A stretch of 64,000 nucleotides of DNA, taken from positions 1 through 64,000 of the forward strand of contig NW_026853246.1 of the NCBI RefSeq assembly GCF_026571515.1. Direction: 5' to 3'. The DNA is from Ruditapes philippinarum (taxonomy: Eukaryota). Below the pieces are notes generated by a model. It had not been told where the DNA came from. It ran no database searches and saw only the letters and a program-made list of their open reading frames with translations. Below, one piece after another: positions 27,739 to 64,000 of the stretch (within the stretch, counting starts at the first letter, position 1; each line of letters starts with the position of its first letter). The position numbers and the translations under genes are program-made.

Positions 27739-28335
27739 AGTTTCACCGGTATTGCATGTAGCTGTAAACTGTACCCGATATTCAGCAGTCCTTGGCCTCG
27801 GCTAAATGAGAGAGAGGAAAAAGAAAATTAAAATATTGATATAGGGCAACTAAAAAAACATGGCTAATTGGTTTCGCAATTACTTGAACGACATGTTCAT
27901 ATCTTTTTGTTTTGTAAAGGATCATTTTCATCTTTAAAATGTGGTCGAATAGCTAATAATAACATTAATTTAGTACTGTTTGTTTTTTGGTTTTATGTCA
28001 CATCGACACAGTATAGGTCATATCGCGACGTTCCAGCTTTACTGGTGGAGGAAGACCTCAAGTTCCCTTCATATTACACATAAAAACATACATATATATG
28101 AAATGCATCTTACATATTAAATCACTTACCAAAAATGCAAAAGAAACCGTACATTTTTCCTTTCGTGAGCTGAAATAATATTTTCAAATTTCACACCAAG
28201 GAAATCTCCAGCAAAATGAGCTGATCCGACAGTCCGTCATAGTTGTATGCTAACCTCACGCCATTCTGAAGATGGTATTGGTGCAACAACAAAATGTGTC
28301 AGCAATATTAAGCTTAAACAAGCTTTAAGTTCCAT
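27739..28335 (-). pseudogene. G5: G4-like paralog with an in-frame TGA (exons 28335-28153, 27801-27739; exon 3 not found)
   Basis: MELKACLSLILLTHFVVAPIPSSEWREVSIQL*RTVGSAHFAGDFLGVKFENIISAHERKN|GTACGG ... TTTAG|PRPRTAEYRVQFTATCNTGET|GTAAGT. The TGA at 28239-28237 aligns with Arg in G4 and G6. TATA box at ~28430-28421. Confidence 0.82.
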
Positions 28336-29429
28336 TAGTGAATATCACATTTATGTCTTTATTAGAATAACAATGACACTTGTCTTTCTGGTGTATCCCA
28401 CAGAATTACCAAATTTCCCGTATTTATATATACTATAAACAAAATCTATGACAGACGATGATATGTTTAATTTTCTGATTTATGTCTAATTTAGTTCTTG
28501 CCAATTTTAATATGCTTTAAAATGTTGTAATCATTGTAATCGTGATGTGTGTTTTTTAGGAAAAATAAAAATGGAACTGTATATTCAAAGGGACTCCACC
28601 GATGTTTTTTACATAAAGGGACTGTTAATATTTTCCCGCTATTTATGAACCATACGAGCCTGGGCCATTGACTTTGGTGCAAAATTTAAGTTAATTTAAG
28701 TTTTTCCAGGAAATTGAAAGATTTTCAATCAAATAAGGCTACAAAAAACTAAAAAATACGATTTTCAGAATATGTTTCTTAATTATCTTTTTCATATTTT
28801 TCTGTTTTAAATGCCCTGACTAATCTATGTAAGAAAATTAAAATTTTATTTTTTTTCGGATTTTAGACCTTAGTTCCTTTAACGATTGTTTGTTTGGTGT
28901 TGTTGTTTGTACTAAAACTGGTTTACGTAAAACAACAGTTTTTTGTACTATTTGATTAATCAAGTAAGGGTATTATTAGACAAATTGTTGAAAATAACTT
29001 AAATGATAATGAAATGTCGTGCAACTAAAAATGCATGAATATCATTATTCTCAAAGCATATCATCATAAAATAATTTGAATTCTATTTATTATGAAAAAC
29101 GCAATGTAAATAAATAATAAAGCAAGATACTAGAAGGTCTATATTCTTAAATGATTAATCAGTTTCTTGATCTCCTTGCGCAAAATCCAGGAAATCTCAG
29201 GTAAGATACATTTCTTATCCCAAAAGATGGATAATATGTAAAAAAAATTTGGGCATTTAAAGAAAAAGACAAGAACATCCGAAGAAACAAGACAATCAAT
29301 GAAAAAGCCTTTGATTGGCTAAAGGCAGGCGGTGTACAAGTAAAACTGTTCAAATCTTGTCAATTGTATATATCGCCGTCCAGGAACAGCGATAATAATA
29401 ATGCAATTGAGTCTCAAAATAATGAATGG

Positions 29430-49718: not shown

Positions 49719-52504
49719 CTAGTACTTGAAATTAAGCTGGCTGGTCGGAAGACAACCTGTGTTGAAGACTGTCACGTTGAAGGGGTTGAAGATCCACACA
49801 ACATCTGAATGACATTCATATTCCTAAAAAAGACAATGTATTTCTTTAAGAAAAGAAAAAGAGGTCTTCGTCTATCTATCCATCTATTTATCTTTCATTA
49901 ATGTCAAACCCCTCGTGAGGACGTAGACATGTCCGCGCGTCAAAATCGCAAGAAAGTTAAAAAGAGTTAAGAACAGTAAGAAGAATAATAAATATGTTTA
50001 AACCAGGGGGTGGCGGGAAAACTAGGGTGAGATATGTTCAATGCAAGCTATGGATTCACTGAACTGCTCAGGAGTAGAGAGTAGAGCAATTTATATAAGT
50101 TATACAGTCCAGTCTAGGAAAGAAGGACACTTTTTTTTAAAGCGAATAACCTATAACACAGGATATGGCCATGGTGTGATGTTCGGGAGGGGTATCACAT
50201 ATTCTTCTAACGGGATAGCAACAAGACCATAGTGGTCTAAGAGTTCTAGTGTTCTAGTTTTTTCAGCTCTTAAAGTATCATTAATTTTAATACTTTCAGT
50301 ATAGAGGATTTTACTATGACTATGGGTGTGAGAGCCCTGCTCGATCCATTACTGTCATGAACAGACTTGCGGGGTATTTTAAGGTGGACATGGGGTGATC
50401 CCGTTGAGCTTATGGTTATCTCCCGTTCCGTGCGTAATAAAAGATGAAAAATAACAAAAATTATCTAAACACACATTTTGGTGGAAAGGCAGAAGTGTTT
50501 TAACTTGAATTTGAGTATTTGTTATGAAATTGTCAAGTTTGAAACGATAACAAATACGAAATACGAGAGTCAGAAATATGTTTAAATAATCAGTAATGTC
50601 AGTTCAAACTGGAACAAGTTAAATGTTGATGCCGCACATCAAAGACGCCGCCAAATGATGTGACCAGTCAAATAGCATTGAAAATCGCTCTCTATTACAG
50701 TTGAATATCCGAAGCACAAATCAATTGTTTCTCCATTTTCTTGGTATAATAATACTTGTGAGAAAGTAGAACCTAATGAATAAATTCACAAAATTATGCC
50801 AGGTCTGAAATTCTTAAATGTTCGTCTGTTGCGACAAAGACTGAAACGTCTGGTCGAATCAAAATGAATTGGATAACGAAAAAATGAAATGATTGGTATA
50901 CTTATAATAAATTCAACACAATATGTGCCGAGAATAAACCCATTTAAATATTGGTACGAATTGCATAATGTTCGAATGATTTTTAGGACATCTGCAGTGA
51001 TCTCCCCTTACAGGCCGAAGCGAAACCGGTTTGTTGTACTTTCTTAACAGTTGAGTGAGAACCGCCTCTCTGATAGTGGGCGTGGTTTAAACTTTGTAAC
51101 CTTGTAATTTAATGATTCAACAAGTGATATTGATCAAAGTTGTCCTGGTTCCCTTCTACCCCGTCAACGAAGACTATAAGCAGCATAATATCAAATTTAA
51201 TATGACAATTTAAGGCGGAGCCGAACTTCAACAGAGGCGAAGCAAATGAAGTAAGTGACACTGCCTCAGTTGTCACCTCTCTCCACGGTTAAGTTTTAGA
51301 ACGATCGACTATAGACTGGCTCATTGGCACGTTATTTATTATGTAGATAAAATTAGATAATGATGAAAAGAATATGATATTCAAACATGGCACTATCACT
51401 TCAGTTAAACGTTTATTCTAATCCCTTAAAGCTCTGTGACATGTTGTACATCATAAAAGCTATTTTATTAGAAGATTTAAAAACAGTGTGATTTTGTTAA
51501 AACAAAACAAAAACTACACAAAATCAAGTCTAGAATTTCCCCCATTGCTGTACGGACAAATGCATATCTACTAGAAGCCGTTTGCAAGCGGCGTCTAATA
51601 AAAGAGCAATGATTTGAAAGTTTTAAGTGTACGTAAATTGAAAAATAACAGACTTTTTAATTGAATCTTAAAAGCAATAACGTAAACATTTTATTAACGG
51701 AAAGCCATGTCAAATTAAACTTTGTTTTACTGTCAAATAGTTGATGAAACTTTTTCTCACCTCTCCTTTGAAATAAGTTCCAATGAAAGATACTCTGTAT
51801 AGGTCCCAATTGGGAATATTCTGGAAAAAAAAAGAGTTTAAAATCATCAATTTTTTAATGAAAGCATCAACACATTTCAAAAGTTGTCAAAATAATAGAA
51901 AATACAAATGTTTTCAACCTCGACAAATGTTCCAATATGTGTGTGTAAAAACAATTTAGTTTTTTTGCAACAGTAAAATATTTATTTTTCAAATATAAAG
52001 ATTAAACACTTCTTTCCGAATATGAAAATGATACACAATTTGATAACATCTATCTACATTGTTGAAATGTCCGTTAAATCACTTTCTAGTTTCTTGTTAT
52101 AAAGATGTTTTCTTCTTGTATGTTCCTTAAATAATGTGTCAACAAACGTAGAAAGTATATGCAAGTTTTTTAATGCACTTTTTTATAATCATATTCGGGT
52201 CATTTTGTGGTGAGTCGCGTCGTTGAAGTAATATTTTTCCTACCCGTATATATGAAATTGATATGTAAAATCCTTTTTATCAAAAACTATCAAAGAAACA
52301 ACTTACTTCCTCCAATTTGAATGCTGTGATAGGTTGTTTTAACTGACCAGCAAGATGTTCCACGGCCAGGTTTGTTGAATCTTGTACCCTATTGTTATCC
52401 AATCTCAATGCTTTCCATCCATTAAGATCGAAAGGAACGTGAACAGATATGCACAAATAAATCAAACTGAATAAAACGAGCACTCCTAAACTTGACTGAT
52501 GCAT
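49719..52504 (-). CDS. G8: secreted cystatin-fold-like protein, 120 aa, 3 exons (52504-52307, 51820-51761, 49823-49719)
   Basis: Canonical phase-0 junctions. Spliced: MHQSSLGVLVLFSLIYLCISVHVPFDLNGWKALRLDNNRVQDSTNLAVEHLAGQLKQPITAFKLEE/NIPNWDLYRVSFIGTYFKGE/EYECHSDVVWIFNPFNVTVFNTGCLPTSQLNFKY*. Confidence 0.9.
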
Positions 52505-57892: not shown

Positions 57893-58062
57893 GACATGGT
57901 CGAGTGTGGTTAACGCTTCCGACTAGTAATATAAGAAAGAGGACTTTCTTTCCGTGAGCAAGAAACTTTACACTCATTGCTTAGTCCTGGTTGATTCCAG
58001 GAACGGATTTGAGAGTGTTTCAATAAGCTTATGGCTTAAAACACAATCGAACTTAAATAAAT
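57893..58062 (+). mobile_element. tRNA-derived SINE; a 3' fragment copy lies at ~62706-62790
   Basis: A-box-like TGGTCGAGTGTGGTTAA, core GAGCAAGAAACTTTAC..CATTGCTTAGTCCTGGTTG.TTCCAGGAACGGATT and tail AAATAAAT; the tail is shared with 62706-62790. Confidence 0.65.
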
Positions 58063-58643
58063 TCTTAACATGGACCAAAAAGCCCCTCTGGAACAGGGTT
58101 AAGGATGCGAAACTCTTTTACTCAAAACCAGTTACTGAGAAATTATAATTCATTCTTTGCTTTATATTTATTTGTGTTAAAATTAAAAGGGGTAAACACT
58201 TAAAAAAATACTATGTTTCATGTTCATAGTGCTCTAAAGTGTTTTAAAAACGTTTCTTTGAAATAAGTAAGGGTATTGTTAAGTAAGTAAACGATAAATT
58301 CAAATTTTTAACGTTTTATTCCTTTCTTTATTATTTAGTACTATAAGATGTCGCACCTTTTCTTTCTTTATGTGGACACCAATTATAATAATATTATTGA
58401 ACATCATAAAATGCTTATAAGAATAGCGAAACAATGAAATAACATATAACTCCTACAATTTATTTCTTTATTAACATCTTTATTGTTCTCTAAAAATAAC
58501 AATAAGTATCAAATCTTGAAAAACAATGTTAATACATTTTGAGTAATTCATGGTGCATGAACCATTGCATGAATTTTATAAACCCTTTACAACATGGGTT
58601 CAATTGGATATGGGTTGTTTGTCCGATTGTCGTTTTTTCAGGC

Positions 58644-61600
58644 TTAATAACCTTTTGTAGCAGTTTTCTCCTTTGTAGGGGCTGGTCCCTTGTAAGATGG
58701 AGGAACAACCTTTGCATTTGGAACATATTTTGGTTGATATGAAGGAGCCGGAGGAGCTACTGTAGGAAATGGAGTAACATAATTTTTACCCTGAGGTGAA
58801 GCTGTTTCAGAGGGTATGTCAAGGCCAAATAGCTTGTAGATAAGCTCTGCTTTGAAAAGGGCATCATCATACGCAGGGGCCTTTGTCGGTAACGATCCGT
58901 ATGTTGATTTGCTAGAGTCTAATTTCTTGTACGTTGTCTTTGCCTTTGTTTGGATTGGCTTATAAGATTCTTTTTTAAACTTTGGTGCTAGATTGTAAGT
59001 GTTTTTCGTTGCTGTATTTGATTGGTATTTTATAGTTTTCACTGAATCTTTGTACTGTACTGCTTTGCTTCCTGTTTTGTCATAAGTGGTTGTTTTAACA
59101 CCAGGTTCCTTGTTTGTCGACTTAACACTTTTGACGTAACTAATCGGCGATTCAGAGTAGGCGATTTTATTATTATTATTATTCATATTATTATTATCGA
59201 GTGCACTATTTGGACCAATCTTGTAAGATGATTTCACTACTGGAGCATAATTAACTGGTGTGTCTTTATTTGTTACAATCTTAGTTTGAGTACTGTCATA
59301 TGACTTTGATTTTATTACTGGGGCATAATTGATTGGCGAGTTTTTATTTACTGGTGCCATATTATCAGCTGCAGCATTTGTTCCGGTTGACGGATATGTC
59401 GATTTCACTGCAGGAACATAATTGATCGGCGTTTCTTTATTTATTTGCGTTTTGTATCCAGGTTTTGTGTCTGTTGATTTATAAGAAGACTTCGTTGCGG
59501 AAGAATAACTGACTGGAGAATCATTAATTGCAAGATTTTTGTCATTAGTCAAAGTCTTTGTTACCGTTTGTGTGTACGTTGATTTCGCTGCAGGGACATA
59601 CTTGACTGGTGCACCATTATTTCCTGACGTTTTATAATCTTTTGTATTTTTGGTATCAGCAGACTTGTACGTGGATTTCACTGCCGTGGCATAGTTGACT
59701 GGCGAATCTTTAACTGACGGGTTTTTGTCATTAGCTTTACTCTTTGTGTCCAAAGGTGTGTAAGATGATTTCGCCGCAGGAACATATTTAATTGGTGAGC
59801 CAGTTTTTCCCGACTTTTTATAGTCTGTTGAATTCTTAGCGTCAGCTGACTGGTATGTCGATTTCACAACTGGAGCATAGTTGACCGGCGAATCTTTAAC
59901 TGCTGAATTTTGATTACTAGTTGAACTTTTTATACTGTATGTCGATTTCACTGTAGAGACATGTTTAGTTTTTGAGCCATAATTTCCTATTGGACTTTTA
60001 GTGTCAATTGACTTGTATGTCGATTTAATGACTGGAGCATAATTGACGGGTGAATCTTTAATTGTAGGTTCTTTACTATTTGTTGAACTTTTTGTCTCAT
60101 TTAACGGGTATGATGGCTTAATTGCAGGGTTATACTTGACTGATGGGTACTTTGCTGAACTCTTGGTGTCGATTGACTGGTATTTCGACTTAACTGCTGG
60201 TGCATATTTCACTGGCGAATCTTTGACTGCAGGTGGTTCGTAATTAGTTGAACTCTTTGTGTCTGTTGATGCTTGTGTCTGTTTAATTGCGGGAGCATAC
60301 TTGATTGGCGACTCTTTATTTCCTGAACTTTTATAGTTAGATGAAGTCTTAGTGTCAGTTGACTGGTATGTCGGTTTTAATTCTGGAGCATAATTGACTG
60401 GGGAATCCTTGATTGCAGGCTTTTCATAATTATTAGAACTTTTTGTGTCAGCTGACTTGTATGTCGGTTTTGCTTGAGATGCATATTTTGTTGGTGAGCC
60501 GTTATTCCCTGCTGTTTTCTTGATTGATGTTGTCTTTGTTTCCTTTGAGGGTGCTTCATATTTAATCGGCGAATCTTTATTAACTGTTGCTTTATCATTT
60601 GCACCCTTTGTGTCAGTTGCCTTGTACATCATTTTCTCTACAGGAAGATAATTGATTGGCGAGTCGTTCTTCGCTTGTACTTTCTTACCAGATTCAGCAT
60701 TTACTGGGAGATATTTGATGGGCGATTCTTTACTTACAGCTGTTTTGTCATATGCAGGTTTCGTCTCAACAGACTTATACGTTGTTTTTATGATTGGGTT
60801 TGTTTTGCCATTTTCTTTGCTATATTGTTTTGCTGATCTATAGCTTAATTTATTGATGGTATTAGTATTTATACCTGGGTTATTATTACCTGGGATATAT
60901 TTCGTAGGTTCTTTGACGTTCTGTTTCGTTGTTGATGAGCTCTTATATGTTGGCTTATCATACGTGGGTTGTTTGTGTGTTGGTTTACTTGTAACCGGGG
61001 TCATGTAGTCAGATGCTTTACCTGAGTAAGATGTTGACAAATGCTTATTGATATATGATAGTGGTACACATCCTACATTAAATACTGTAACACCAGGAGG
61101 ATGGTCCGAAATCCATACCACATCTGCATGACATTCATACTCCTGTAACAAGAAAAGACACCGCTTGTTTATAAACTTATCGAGCTGGTTCGTTATATCA
61201 TTTCGTTACTTCTGTTTACAGATTACCATAAACTAAATAGATTACCATAAACATTTAGTTAATTTTTTTGTGTAAGACACATTCTTTAGAATAATCCTTT
61301 GGAACTGGAAATAATATTAGTAAATTGCTATTTATAAAGATCCGAGCTAGCTATTACATATTACATAGCTAATGAAAGGAAGTGGTGGTCAAGTGGTTAA
61401 GTTGTCTGCATCTCTCAATCAAGGACTTGTTTGTTCGAGTCATTCTGAGTCAAATATTATATTTGAAGTTATTGTCATTTATATGGCTAAATTTACAGTT
61501 TTATCACTGTATATATACCAACCCCGTAGATGTTTTATCCATTTTGTAATTTTTATTTAGTGTCTCAGCCTGGAATAAACCTTGTAATTTGAAAATTTGA

Positions 61601-63583
61601 CTAGGTATTTTTTATAATAAAATAAATTAAACTCTTAATGTGACATCAGCAAATATTGGACACATGCTGCTGTAAATGATCGACACAATCTTTTTGAGAA
61701 TAAACAGAAGTAAGAAAAGGAATGACATTTCATTAAAAAAATATTTTCTATTTTATCATTTTGAAATTTTCCGGAGAGAAAATTATCTGACCATCTTTTA
61801 CATATGTTGCCTTTCGGCAATACAAGTACAGTTTAGTAATTTGGTATTTTTGTATGGAAATTAAAAATACTACTTTGTTTACAATTTTCTACTTTTTGTG
61901 AAAATCAATGCACATTCAGCGTTACTTTATTACAAGTGAAAAGCACGTTACATTGTTCTAAAACCACTTTGTAAAGGTTATAAAACTATTGCCTTTCTAA
62001 AGATAAAAACAATGTTTCTGAGGCGTAATGTGCCTTTTAACTTTACCTCTTTTTTCATGAATATTCCTAGGAATGACAACCTGTATAAATCCCATGACGG
62101 AACATTCTGAAATAAAAAAGGAATAAAATGAACATTTTTGCAACATAACATTATAATAATTGTGGTTTTTACTTTTTTTCTCTGGAAGTCTTTTATTTCT
62201 TATGTTTCTATTGTTTTATAATATCGACAATTACAAGTGGGTACAACGTTTTGGTTAGCTTTAATTTACGATTGATCGGTTTGATATTATAATAGTACAT
62301 GTATTATACTGCATTATTTACCTTAAAATGAACATCATAATTAATATCATATAAATAAAATAACGTCACTTTCATACAATCGCTGTTTTGTTATTGTTAA
62401 AATTTCGACCATAAATGAAAATGATATATTCATACCTTAAGTTGCCTCCTTGGAGGGCCTCTTTATAAAGATTGCATTGTATATTTATTAAAAGTGAGAG
62501 TTATTTTCGTATTATTAGAGCATACTTTATTCAAACCTTACTCTGCGTAATACCTTAAAATTTTCAGTTTTAAATGTAGACAACAACTTTGAACTCTTTG
62601 AGGGAAATTTTCATAATCGATTCCAATTTTTGACGGTCCTATCGTGTTAAACATATGTAGGCTTTGTAATGCAGTAATCAAGTTCAACAATTTAAGTTTG
62701 GACAAAGCATAGTACTGGTTGGTTCCAGGAATGGATTCGAAAGTGTGTCTATAAGCTTATAGCTTCCTACACAAACTAAAATAAATTCTGTATAAACCAA
62801 AACCAACCAAGCGAAACTTGTATGATAAAATAAGATTTATATTTCATTTGAAAATGTTTTATTGTATCATACTTTGACAGTGACATTGCAGTCACTTTAC
62901 ACCATTGAAATGAAACAAATTGAGATAAAGCCGTTTTCCAAATATATGAACTAATCTTCGTTTATTTTTATTGCATTAATGACTTAATTATAATTAATTT
63001 CTGTAGCCTTTTCTATCCTTTTTTACTAAGGTATCATCTATTTTTAAGAGTGTTTTTAACTGTGATACATATCAGAGTATTAATAACAATGTTTTATGAT
63101 CTTTTTAAATAAGTTACATCTCAAAGTATAAATAGTCATGATTTGAATTTTATATAATTAGAATGCTAATATGTTTTGGATATTGGAAATTTCCATTTCA
63201 AAGTTAATAAGGTTATAAGAGTAAGTAATTGAATGCTGATAATTTTGATTTTGAATCGTACTGTCATTTTATCGCGCTCAAGAGATTACAACAGGTTCAA
63301 ATACTTACCTTATTAAAACGATCCATTGTATCACTTATCTAAATCAATATAAATGTTATTTAACTTTTTATTGTAGTCCACTTACTTCAATCCATTTAAA
63401 GGCAGTAATTGGTTTTATTAGTTTCCCTCCAATATGTTTAGCAGCTACTGACATTGAATCCGATACATTTTTGTCTGTTAGTGAAACTGGCTTCCACCCG
63501 GTCAAATCAAAAGGAACATGAACGCACACGGAACATGTAACCAAAATACTAAATACCAGTACTCGTTTAACAGACAGTAGCAT
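58644..63583 (-). CDS. G9: secreted 918-aa protein with an N-terminal cystatin-fold-like domain and a ~800-aa K/T/S/P/Y-rich repetitive tail; 3 exons (63583-63386, 62106-62047, 61142-58644)
   Basis: MLLSVKRVLVFSILVTCSVCVHVPFDLTGWKPVSLTDKNVSDSMSVAAKHIGGKLIKPITAFKWIE|GTAAGT ... TTTCAG|NVPSWDLYRLSFLGIFMKKE|GTAAAG ... TTACAG|EYECHADVVWISDHPPGVTVFNVGCVP... The 2499-nt terminal exon is open to TAA at 58646-58644. Several AATAAA signals lie on the minus strand at ~58484-58459. The N-terminal domain is closest to G8. Confidence 0.92.
59130..60740 (-). repeat. Coding tandem repeat: ~18-19 units of ~31 aa (93 nt), consensus SP(V/I)(N/K)YAPAVKSTYxSxDTKSSxNYxxxxxK(D/E)
   Basis: [S/T/A]P-[VI]-[NKS]-Y anchors recur at mostly 31-aa spacing in the translated ORF. 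Confidence 0.9.
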
Positions 63584-64000
63584 TGTCAAATCTCTTTAAA
63601 ATTCAACAAAGTCAAATGTCTGTTAATGTTGGATAAGCCAGCTACGGCAACTTAGCGAGCACTAAATGGATTTTGCATACGTACAATTAATAAACCTGAA
63701 AGACATATCATAAATTTAAATAATTAATATTTGTTAATTGCATGACAACTTGTCTTAATCATTAGGGAAATGGTGCACCTCGTATTGCAAATGTGATTGT
63801 TTTTTTAATATACAAAGAATTGAAAACACCCATTGTGGATTGATACATATCATGAACTCAAATGCTACCGCAAGCATAAGTCGTGTACACTTCGCCATGC
63901 ATTACACCTTAGACGAATATATTATTTAACACATAAACCTATCCCTTCAAAAACAAATATGAATAATTTGAGAAGAAAAAAATCCTGTAACCAAAGGTTG

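Follow-up and report, generated by a model that had tools for sequence, protein, structure and literature searches.

What would an animal build from a protein that joins a small folded domain to some 790 residues of lysine- and tyrosine-rich repeats? The question is raised by G9, a gene on the minus strand of a 64,000-nucleotide stretch of the Manila clam genome (Ruditapes philippinarum, contig NW_026853246.1, positions 1 to 64,000; this whole stretch is called the window below). A first-pass annotation, made from the letters alone, had read G9 as a cystatin-like head fused to a tail resembling adhesive or coating proteins of the 3,4-dihydroxyphenylalanine (DOPA) type, with mussel foot protein 1 (Mfp-1) as the model. 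We find that G9 is a real and expressed gene, that its nearest paralog encodes a shell-matrix protein, Insoluble matrix shell protein 2 (IMSP2), and that its tail is an array of diverged 31-residue units. The reading that we rank first, and to which we give roughly an even chance, is that the mantle secretes G9 as a shell or periostracum protein, part of the matrix or a coating, which Tyr/Lys cross-linking renders insoluble.

G9 is transcribed as a single spliced message carrying head and tail

G9 consists of three exons running from an ATG at 63583 to a stop at 58644 and encodes a product of 918 residues, laid out as a signal peptide, a head of ~100 residues and a tail of ~790 residues (Table 1). 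The minus-strand frame at 58644-61151 holds 835 open codons in a window that is AT-rich throughout (29-34% G+C). Both introns begin with GT, end with AG and lie in phase 0, as read from the splice sites. RefSeq already lists the protein as XP_060579375.1 (918 residues), automatically named "adhesive plaque matrix protein-like". This record matches exon 3 at 100% identity, and its first 86 residues equal the translations of exons 1 and 2, residues 1-66 being those of exon 1; XP_060579375.1 therefore stood for the joined, spliced G9 protein in our protein-level analyses.

We mapped four public RNA runs (X1, X4, X19 and X21) on positions 58300-63750. In each of X1 and X4, which come from two different studies, one spliced contig spans exons 1 and 2 and almost the whole of exon 3, with a length of 2633 nt and a word depth of 325 in X1, and of 2644 nt and 35 in X4. 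The joints fall at exactly 62106|63386 and 61141|62046 in both runs, with GT..AG ends, so that splice sites and transcript joints together bear out the annotated gene model codon for codon. Exon 1 is covered by contig pieces at 63386-63646 (X1) and 63386-63514 (X4), which takes the 5' untranslated region (UTR) to at least 63646. At the other end the contigs reach 58509, where depth in X1 is in the thousands, and an AATAAA lies a little further 3', at ~58485-58480. Since a six-frame search of the clam's own genome places the tail at a single locus, the spliced contigs are cDNA and not the trace of a retrocopy. The tail is transcribed in one piece with the head: the contigs of X1 and X4 run from exon 1 through exon 3, rather than ending before the repeats or splicing them out, the contrary outcome that the first-pass annotation had considered. 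Raw RNA-seq reads of the same species were almost silent on the G9 exons in the other two runs, with a few reads in X19 and none in X21, in contrast to X1 and X4, and we conclude that expression of G9 is strongly sample-specific.

The transcripts also sample allelic variation. Against the window, 27 exon-3 differences are listed for the X1 and X4 alleles, 11 of them synonymous and 16 nonsynonymous, corresponding to a ratio of nonsynonymous to synonymous polymorphism (pN/pS) of ~0.42. The sole indel is in frame, and no stop or frameshift allele was found among the X1 and X4 exon-3 alleles.

The head is predicted to share a cystatin fold with its paralog IMSP2

The paralog closest to G9 is G8, which lies in tandem 6 kb downstream on the same strand. 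A search with the frame of G8 exon 1 identified its product as the 120-residue XP_060579374.1, which is UniProt P86983, IMSP2. The G9 head aligns with IMSP2 over the whole length of the latter (54% identity, 75% positives, E 4e-44, residues 4-118 against 5-117). In both genes exon 1 has 66 codons, exon 2 has 20 codons and exon 3 opens at EYEC, and the two proteins share the type of signal peptide, three exons with phase-0 introns, the Cys pair and a predicted cystatin fold. The hydrophobic N-terminal signal of G9 agrees with its annotation as a secreted protein. The two differ in how they end: the openings of their third exons are 66% identical (EYECH..VVW..GC), but G8 stops after 34 codons, 8 residues past the second Cys, whereas G9 continues for ~800 residues, its third exon running for the 832 codons first annotated.

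The fold assignment comes from structure prediction. AlphaFold2, given XP_060579375.1 with the paralog exons as separate alignment rows, modelled residues 30-125 with a predicted local distance difference test score (pLDDT) of 78-94, as a strand, a helix and four long antiparallel strands. When this head model was compared with the Protein Data Bank (PDB) by Foldseek, the top 50 matches were almost all cystatin-superfamily chains or scaffolds engineered from them, including cystatins D, E/M, C, F and CRES, chicken cystatin, tick and plant cystatins, monellin, latexin and fetuin; the probability was 1.00 for most, target template-modelling (TM) scores were 0.55-0.73, and E values were weak (1e-3 to 1e-2). 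VIA-align superposed model residues 26-120 on cystatins with Z scores of 9.0-11.4 and a root-mean-square deviation of 1.9-3.0 Å over 82-87 residues. The AlphaFold model of IMSP2 (pLDDT 85, predicted TM score 0.70) drew the same cystatin-type list of matches, and the ESM Atlas lead for the head was likewise a cystatin. The annotated cystatin-like head is thus right at the level of fold, and on these models we take the G9 head to be a divergent cystatin-fold module of the IMSP2 family, for which the predicted fold appears to be new.

Sequence profiles give no such indication. The Pfam cystatin profiles PF00031 and PF16845 matched neither XP_060579375.1 nor IMSP2, even at E<=10; Pfam returned nothing relevant for any G9 exon, for XP_060579375.1 or for IMSP2, and phmmer of IMSP2 against the PDB sequences returned nothing at E<=10. 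Type-2 cystatins (C, D, E/M, F and CRES) resemble the G9 head in their strand, helix and four-stranded antiparallel sheet (Z 9-11.4), in being secreted domains of ~100 residues with a Cys pair bridging the last two strands, and in their three-exon gene, yet identity to them is only 13-18%. Where cystatins have QxVxG in loop 1, G9 has E-N-V-P-S (model residues 65-70) and IMSP2 has E-N-I-P-N. Loop 2 of G9 has no PW, Trp96 standing two residues ahead of the loop, and the one disulfide would be formed by the sole Cys pair of the mature protein, Cys90 and Cys112, which is symmetric about loop 2. Judged from these residues, the inhibitory signature of cystatins does not appear to be kept in the G9 head, and its motifs look degenerate. 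The first intron of G9 falls between E66 and N67, just before the N-V-P-S of loop 1. In vertebrate type-2 cystatin genes, which likewise comprise three exons, the first intron directly follows the Q of QxVxG, a place that the G9 intron presumably matches.

The tail is an old array of 31-residue units

Composition sets the tail apart, with 15.2% Lys, 12.7% Ser, 11.1% Thr, 9.2% Pro, 8.0% Tyr, 8% Asn and 3% Gly, an isoelectric point (pI) of 9.76, a net charge of +71 and a summed Pro, Thr and Ser content of 33.7%. The two Cys and one Trp of the exon-3 frame all lie in its first 25 residues, and past Cys112 there are none, in keeping with the Lys-rich tail free of Cys and Trp that had been annotated. 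AlphaFold2 leaves the tail disordered (pLDDT ~30), save for a short helix at residues 846-857.

Tandem Repeats Finder assigns the tail a period of 93 nt. The unit consensus is S-P-(I/V)-N-Y-A-P-x-x-K-S-T-Y-x-S-T-D-T-K-x-x-x-N-(Y)-K, and of the 14 units aligned, all have Tyr at position 5, 11 have it at position 13 and 6 at position 24. On average the units share 60% identity at the DNA level and 42% at the protein level. This pattern reads as that of an old array whose Tyr, Pro and Lys positions selection appears to have preserved.

Short motifs built around Tyr are far more frequent than composition predicts. The tail contains 14 instances of K[PS][ST]Y, compared with 0.58 in composition shuffles, and 10 of [AVIL]K[PS][ST]Y[KQPT], compared with 0.04. 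The four motifs that the first-pass annotation had listed are all in place (AKPTYK at 60473-60456, DKPTYK at 60959-60942, IKPSYP at 60122-60105 and LKPTYQ at 60380-60363) and are variants of a unit core K-(S/P)-T-Y-K. Its description of Tyr regularly spaced next to Lys stands in part: 30 of the 66 Tyr have an adjacent Lys against 19 expected, a value reached by 0.0005 of shuffles, but the regularity is due to the 31-residue unit, and there is no array of deca- or hexapeptides.

The tail has a single locus and no detected relatives

We ran an exhaustive phmmer search with exon 3 at E<=0.001 against 1.84 billion protein representatives. Its sole match was a fragment of the protein itself (254 residues, 99% identity), whose cluster contains XP_060579375.1; no relative of the tail beyond this fragment was found at that threshold, a result in which the composition correction of HMMER may hide low-complexity likeness. 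A word-indexed protein search with exon 3 gave no match, neither protein search returned a foot protein at E 0.001, and the ESM Atlas offered no usable look-alike for the tail. In the literature searched, neither XP_060579375.1 nor the heptapeptides of the tail repeat were found, and no paper ties an adhesive plaque matrix protein to the Manila clam.

Fragments of the G9 protein at 99% identity, P0001 and P0003, are filed in a JGI/IMG metagenome collection with the name "hypothetical protein", which hints that transcripts or DNA of the host were present in a sample from the environment or from a microbiome.

How the tail arose can be approached from the short paralogs, from which G9 differs only by a longer last exon, as expected under the tail extension first annotated. 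The alignment of G8 and G9 reaches to within three codons of the G8 stop. Comparison of the 3' flanks of G8 and G7 with the G9 tail (blastn and tblastx) found no similarity past the shared head, and since the flanks share nothing with the tail, the DNA from which it came is untraceable. Because the tail shares its exon with the last part of the head, the simplest history is that the last exon was lengthened, through loss or shift of the stop, and that a 93-nt unit was then multiplied.

Two genomic open reading frames from Logan/ENA bear on the age of the gene pair. P0004 matches G9 exon 1 at 79% identity and IMSP2 at 45%, whereas P0006 matches IMSP2 exon 1 at 83% and G9 at 49%; they are probably the G9 and IMSP2 exon 1 orthologs of a related venerid. 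This pattern of identities implies that the duplication that produced G8 and G9 is older than the split from that taxon.

A proposed matrix protein of the shell or periostracum

We rank the shell or periostracum reading first because of the secreted structural features of G9, its IMSP2 paralog, and the precedents set by KRMP proteins and other low-complexity shell proteins. The broader proposal of the first-pass annotation, a secreted structural, adhesive or tanned-cuticle protein, holds for a secreted, disordered and basic repeat protein rich in Lys, Tyr, Pro, Ser and Thr, but the IMSP2 paralog points away from its byssal branch. That paralogy is the sole biological anchor for G9, and as a relationship between sequences it points to the shell. 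The IMSPs are said to have been named by Marie et al. 2011 from tandem mass spectrometry (MS/MS) of the acid-insoluble shell matrix. The assignment of IMSP2 to that matrix comes from its UniProt name and from this study, which PMC6641155 cites. IMSP2-like transcripts occur in the mantle of another venerid, Chamelea gallina, among biomineralisation genes and together with a tyrosinase-like protein (PMC9100110).

Precedents for such a tail exist among shell proteins. The KRMPs of pearl oysters are basic (pI 9.5-9.8), Lys-rich and Tyr-rich, repetitive proteins of the insoluble shell matrix; chitin is bound by their Tyr-rich part, for which quinone tanning is proposed, and anion binding and cross-linking are proposed for their Lys-rich part (PMC4498902). 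G9 is comparable in its basicity and its repetitive, Lys/Tyr-rich low complexity. It differs in interleaving Lys and Tyr within one long repeat, where the small KRMPs have separate Lys-rich and Gly/Tyr-rich blocks, and in its low Gly; KRMPs lack a cystatin-fold domain and are unrelated to G9 in sequence. Shell matrix proteins typically combine conserved modules with low-complexity domains that evolve fast (PMC8217771), and G9 follows this pattern, being secreted, with a tail unique in its genome and in the databases and a head shared with its paralogs.

The mechanism that we propose begins with the history set out above, in which the last exon of an IMSP2-like gene would have been extended and a 93-nt unit multiplied to give the tail. 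After secretion, the conserved and exposed Tyr of the SPxNY and K-S/P-T-Y-K motifs, together with the numerous Lys, would be substrates for tyrosinase/quinone and Lys-quinone cross-linking, which would make the G9 protein part of an insoluble framework. The net charge of ~+70 could bind acidic matrix proteins, polysaccharide or carbonate, and the head might either dock G9 to other members of the IMSP2 family or shield the matrix from proteases.

Several considerations weigh against this reading. Where G9 is secreted, how it would be cross-linked and what its head does are all inferred, as is expression in the mantle; the location of a paralog does not fix that of G9 itself. Mfp-1 has a Tyr content of ~20%, beside which 8% is low for a tanned protein, and the Ser and Thr that make up 24% of the tail would also suit heavy O-glycosylation. 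Among the literature searched, the G9 protein is not reported in shell proteomes, and IMSP names appear there among genes of the haemocytes and hepatopancreas in immune-challenge data, which means that the family may not be specific to the shell.

Alternative readings

The same residues could serve adhesion. An adhesive or thread coating of the Mfp-1 kind, made in the foot of post-larvae or juveniles and with its Tyr converted to DOPA for adhesion and metal-mediated cohesion, is in our view unlikely. Mfp-1 is not known to have a globular head, whereas G9 bears one of predicted cystatin fold whose nearest relative is a shell-matrix protein. The tail does share with Mfp-1 that it is secreted, basic, Lys-rich, Cys-free and, by prediction, disordered, and that Lys stands beside Tyr within a K-P/S-T/S-Y-K core; an exact AKPTYK occurs once, and sites of the form x-K-(P/S)-(T/S)-Y-x number about ten, many more than chance would give. 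By analogy it would plausibly be a tyrosinase substrate as well, and strongly sample-specific expression would fit a byssal role. However, AKPSYPPTYK, the decapeptide that is the mfp-1 consensus (PMC6282983; bioRxiv 10.1101/837146), does not occur in G9, whose unit is 31 residues long where Mfp-1 has tandem deca- and hexapeptides. The G9 tail, with 8% Tyr and 9% Pro, has under half the Tyr and Pro of Mfp-1 and is rich instead in Ser, Thr and Asn; the database searches gave no significant alignment to a foot protein, and the literature offers no link between the Manila clam and the name under which RefSeq files G9. Mfp-1 moreover belongs to another animal lineage and probably to another tissue. 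The Mfp-1-type repeat tail is therefore not borne out, and the likeness, which exists at the level of motifs only, is probably convergent, as the first-pass annotation had allowed. DOPA chemistry is common to the shell and byssal readings and, by analogy, is plausible in either.

The large share of Pro, Thr and Ser in a long, disordered repeat domain encoded by a single exon would also suit a mucin-like, heavily O-glycosylated protein secreted into mucus or onto an epithelium as a coat, perhaps with a protective or immune role, in which the cystatin-fold head would act as a protease inhibitor on a glycosylated spacer; the response of other IMSP genes to immune stimuli fits such a role. We consider this improbable, since the best-kept residues of the unit are Tyr, Pro and Lys instead of runs of Ser and Thr, the Pro, Thr and Ser content is below that of typical mucin domains, 15% Lys and 8% Tyr are unusual for them, the inhibitory loop motifs of the head appear degenerate, and the Pfam cystatin model does not match it. 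Another tanned extracellular coat, such as an egg envelope or a siphon or periostracal sheath with the same Tyr/Lys chemistry in another tissue, would account for the sequence features and the sample-specific expression equally, but there is no pointer to gonad or siphon, and context offers a single clue, the shell-matrix paralog, which makes such a coat quite improbable. Finally, loss of a stop codon might have given G9 a tail without a function in its own right. Change is tolerated in low-complexity sequence, nonsynonymous differences make up 16 of the 27 listed, and the tail has no relatives in the databases or genome searched, all as neutral run-on would have it. Yet a frame of 832 codons cannot persist by chance in DNA of 30-34% G+C, all 14 units have Tyr at position 5 although their DNA has drifted to 60% identity, and the pN/pS ratio, the in-frame indel and the high transcript depth argue the same way; neutral run-on is strongly disfavoured and, in our judgement, scarcely credible.

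A more specific form of the shell reading is a speculation that we hold only tentatively, and think rather doubtful. It supposes that a cystatin-fold module was recruited as a building block of the venerid shell matrix, and that one copy came to anchor a tail born de novo by stop loss and 93-nt expansion. That tail would be a polycationic polymer studded with Tyr, which tyrosinase would cross-link into the insoluble framework and whose K-P/S-T-Y-K chemistry would have converged with that of Mfp-1. If true, it would add a new architecture of framework protein to the shell and periostracum, and would offer a datable natural example of a biomaterial low-complexity domain arising in a tandem gene cluster.

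The gene model of G9 is already known from RefSeq, as are low-complexity shell or adhesive proteins as a kind. What appears to be new is the unique 790-residue Lys/Tyr repeat on one member of the IMSP2 family and the motif-level likeness to Mfp-1 that lies behind the database name. The orphan IMSP2 family, which counts at least ten tandem relatives of IMSP2, gains a predicted fold, which suggests roles such as protease control, docking or domain-swapped assembly, and the short and long paralogs, side by side with the same exon layout, make a clean case of the birth of a low-complexity domain. The automatic name of G9 would mislead the mining of clam genomes for mussel-type glues. Were its Tyr oxidised, the 31-residue unit would be a new natural template for Lys/DOPA materials.

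The paralog cluster and features of the locus

The window holds about nine tandem minus-strand paralogs (numbered G1 to G9) of the IMSP2/cystatin-fold family, small and secreted apart from the tail of G9 (Table 1). They form two subgroups with different second exons, G1-G5 and G7-G9, and a genome search confined the G7-G9 subfamily to this cluster in the 1.41-Gb assembly. The last exon of G7 stops right after the second Cys, and the start of G9 exon 3 is alignable to the third exons of both G8 and G7. The far end of the G9 protein, within its non-repeat C-terminal region, is Pro-rich, with PSY-QPKY and PPSYKGP.

Table 1 Features of G9 and its paralogs in the window.
Feature	Position	Strand	Description
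G9 exon 1	63386..63646	(-)	Coding sequence 63583-63386, 66 codons; ATG and GTAAGT donor read; signal peptide (~residues 1-22), then first strand, helix and strand 2 of the head
G9 exon 2	62047..62106	(-)	20 codons, phase 0 at both ends; splice sites read; loop 1 (N-V-P-S-W-D) and head strand 3; conserved in G8 and G7
G9 exon 3, coding sequence	61142-58647	(-)	832 codons, then stop
Exon 3 start	61026..61142	(-)	Last two head strands, Cys90, Cys112, Trp96 and short helix; acceptor read
Irregular N-terminal part of tail	60726..61025	(-)	Residues 126-225; rich in Lys, Thr, Tyr and Asn; holds PTYDKPTYK; pLDDT ~30
Repeat array	59058..60725	(-)	~17 diverged units of ~31 residues (93 nt), two of double length
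AKPTYK, sole exact copy	60456..60473	(-)	Variant of unit core x-K-(S/P)-T-Y-K
In-frame 15-nt deletion allele	59872..59886	(-)	Inside the repeat array; run X4
Non-repeat C-terminal region	58647..59057	(-)	Predicted amphipathic helix, residues 846-857 (58830-58865)
Stop and 3'UTR	58509..58646	(-)	Stop 58646-58644; 3'UTR at least 135 nt; contigs reach 58509
G8 (IMSP2)	49719..52504	(-)	UniProt P86983, XP_060579374.1, 120 residues; nearest paralog
G8 exons	52504-52307, 51820-51761, 49823-49719	(-)	
Paralog exon 1s within 1-58000	near 2054, 8669, 18609, 26019, 34841, 42231, 52504	(-)	

Exon 1 of a tenth member lies on the minus strand of the same contig at 92396-92584, 29 kb past the window and with 35% identity to the G9 head, and the cluster therefore extends beyond the window. 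An extra copy of a G4-type exon 1, at 28150-28344 on the minus strand, contains an in-frame stop and is probably a pseudogene fragment. Elsewhere on the contig, a minisatellite at 77161-78748 gives rise to spurious long frames of a repeated unit of ~13 residues.

Intron 1 of G9 harbours a dispersed element of ~95 nt at 62711-62800, a copy of which lies at 57983-58081 and which also occurs at 61864-61896; there are at least 2120 candidate copies in the genome, at ~95% identity. RNA depth over this element is very high in all four runs. The reads continue from it into unlike sequence, and this signal must therefore come from copies elsewhere and not from G9.

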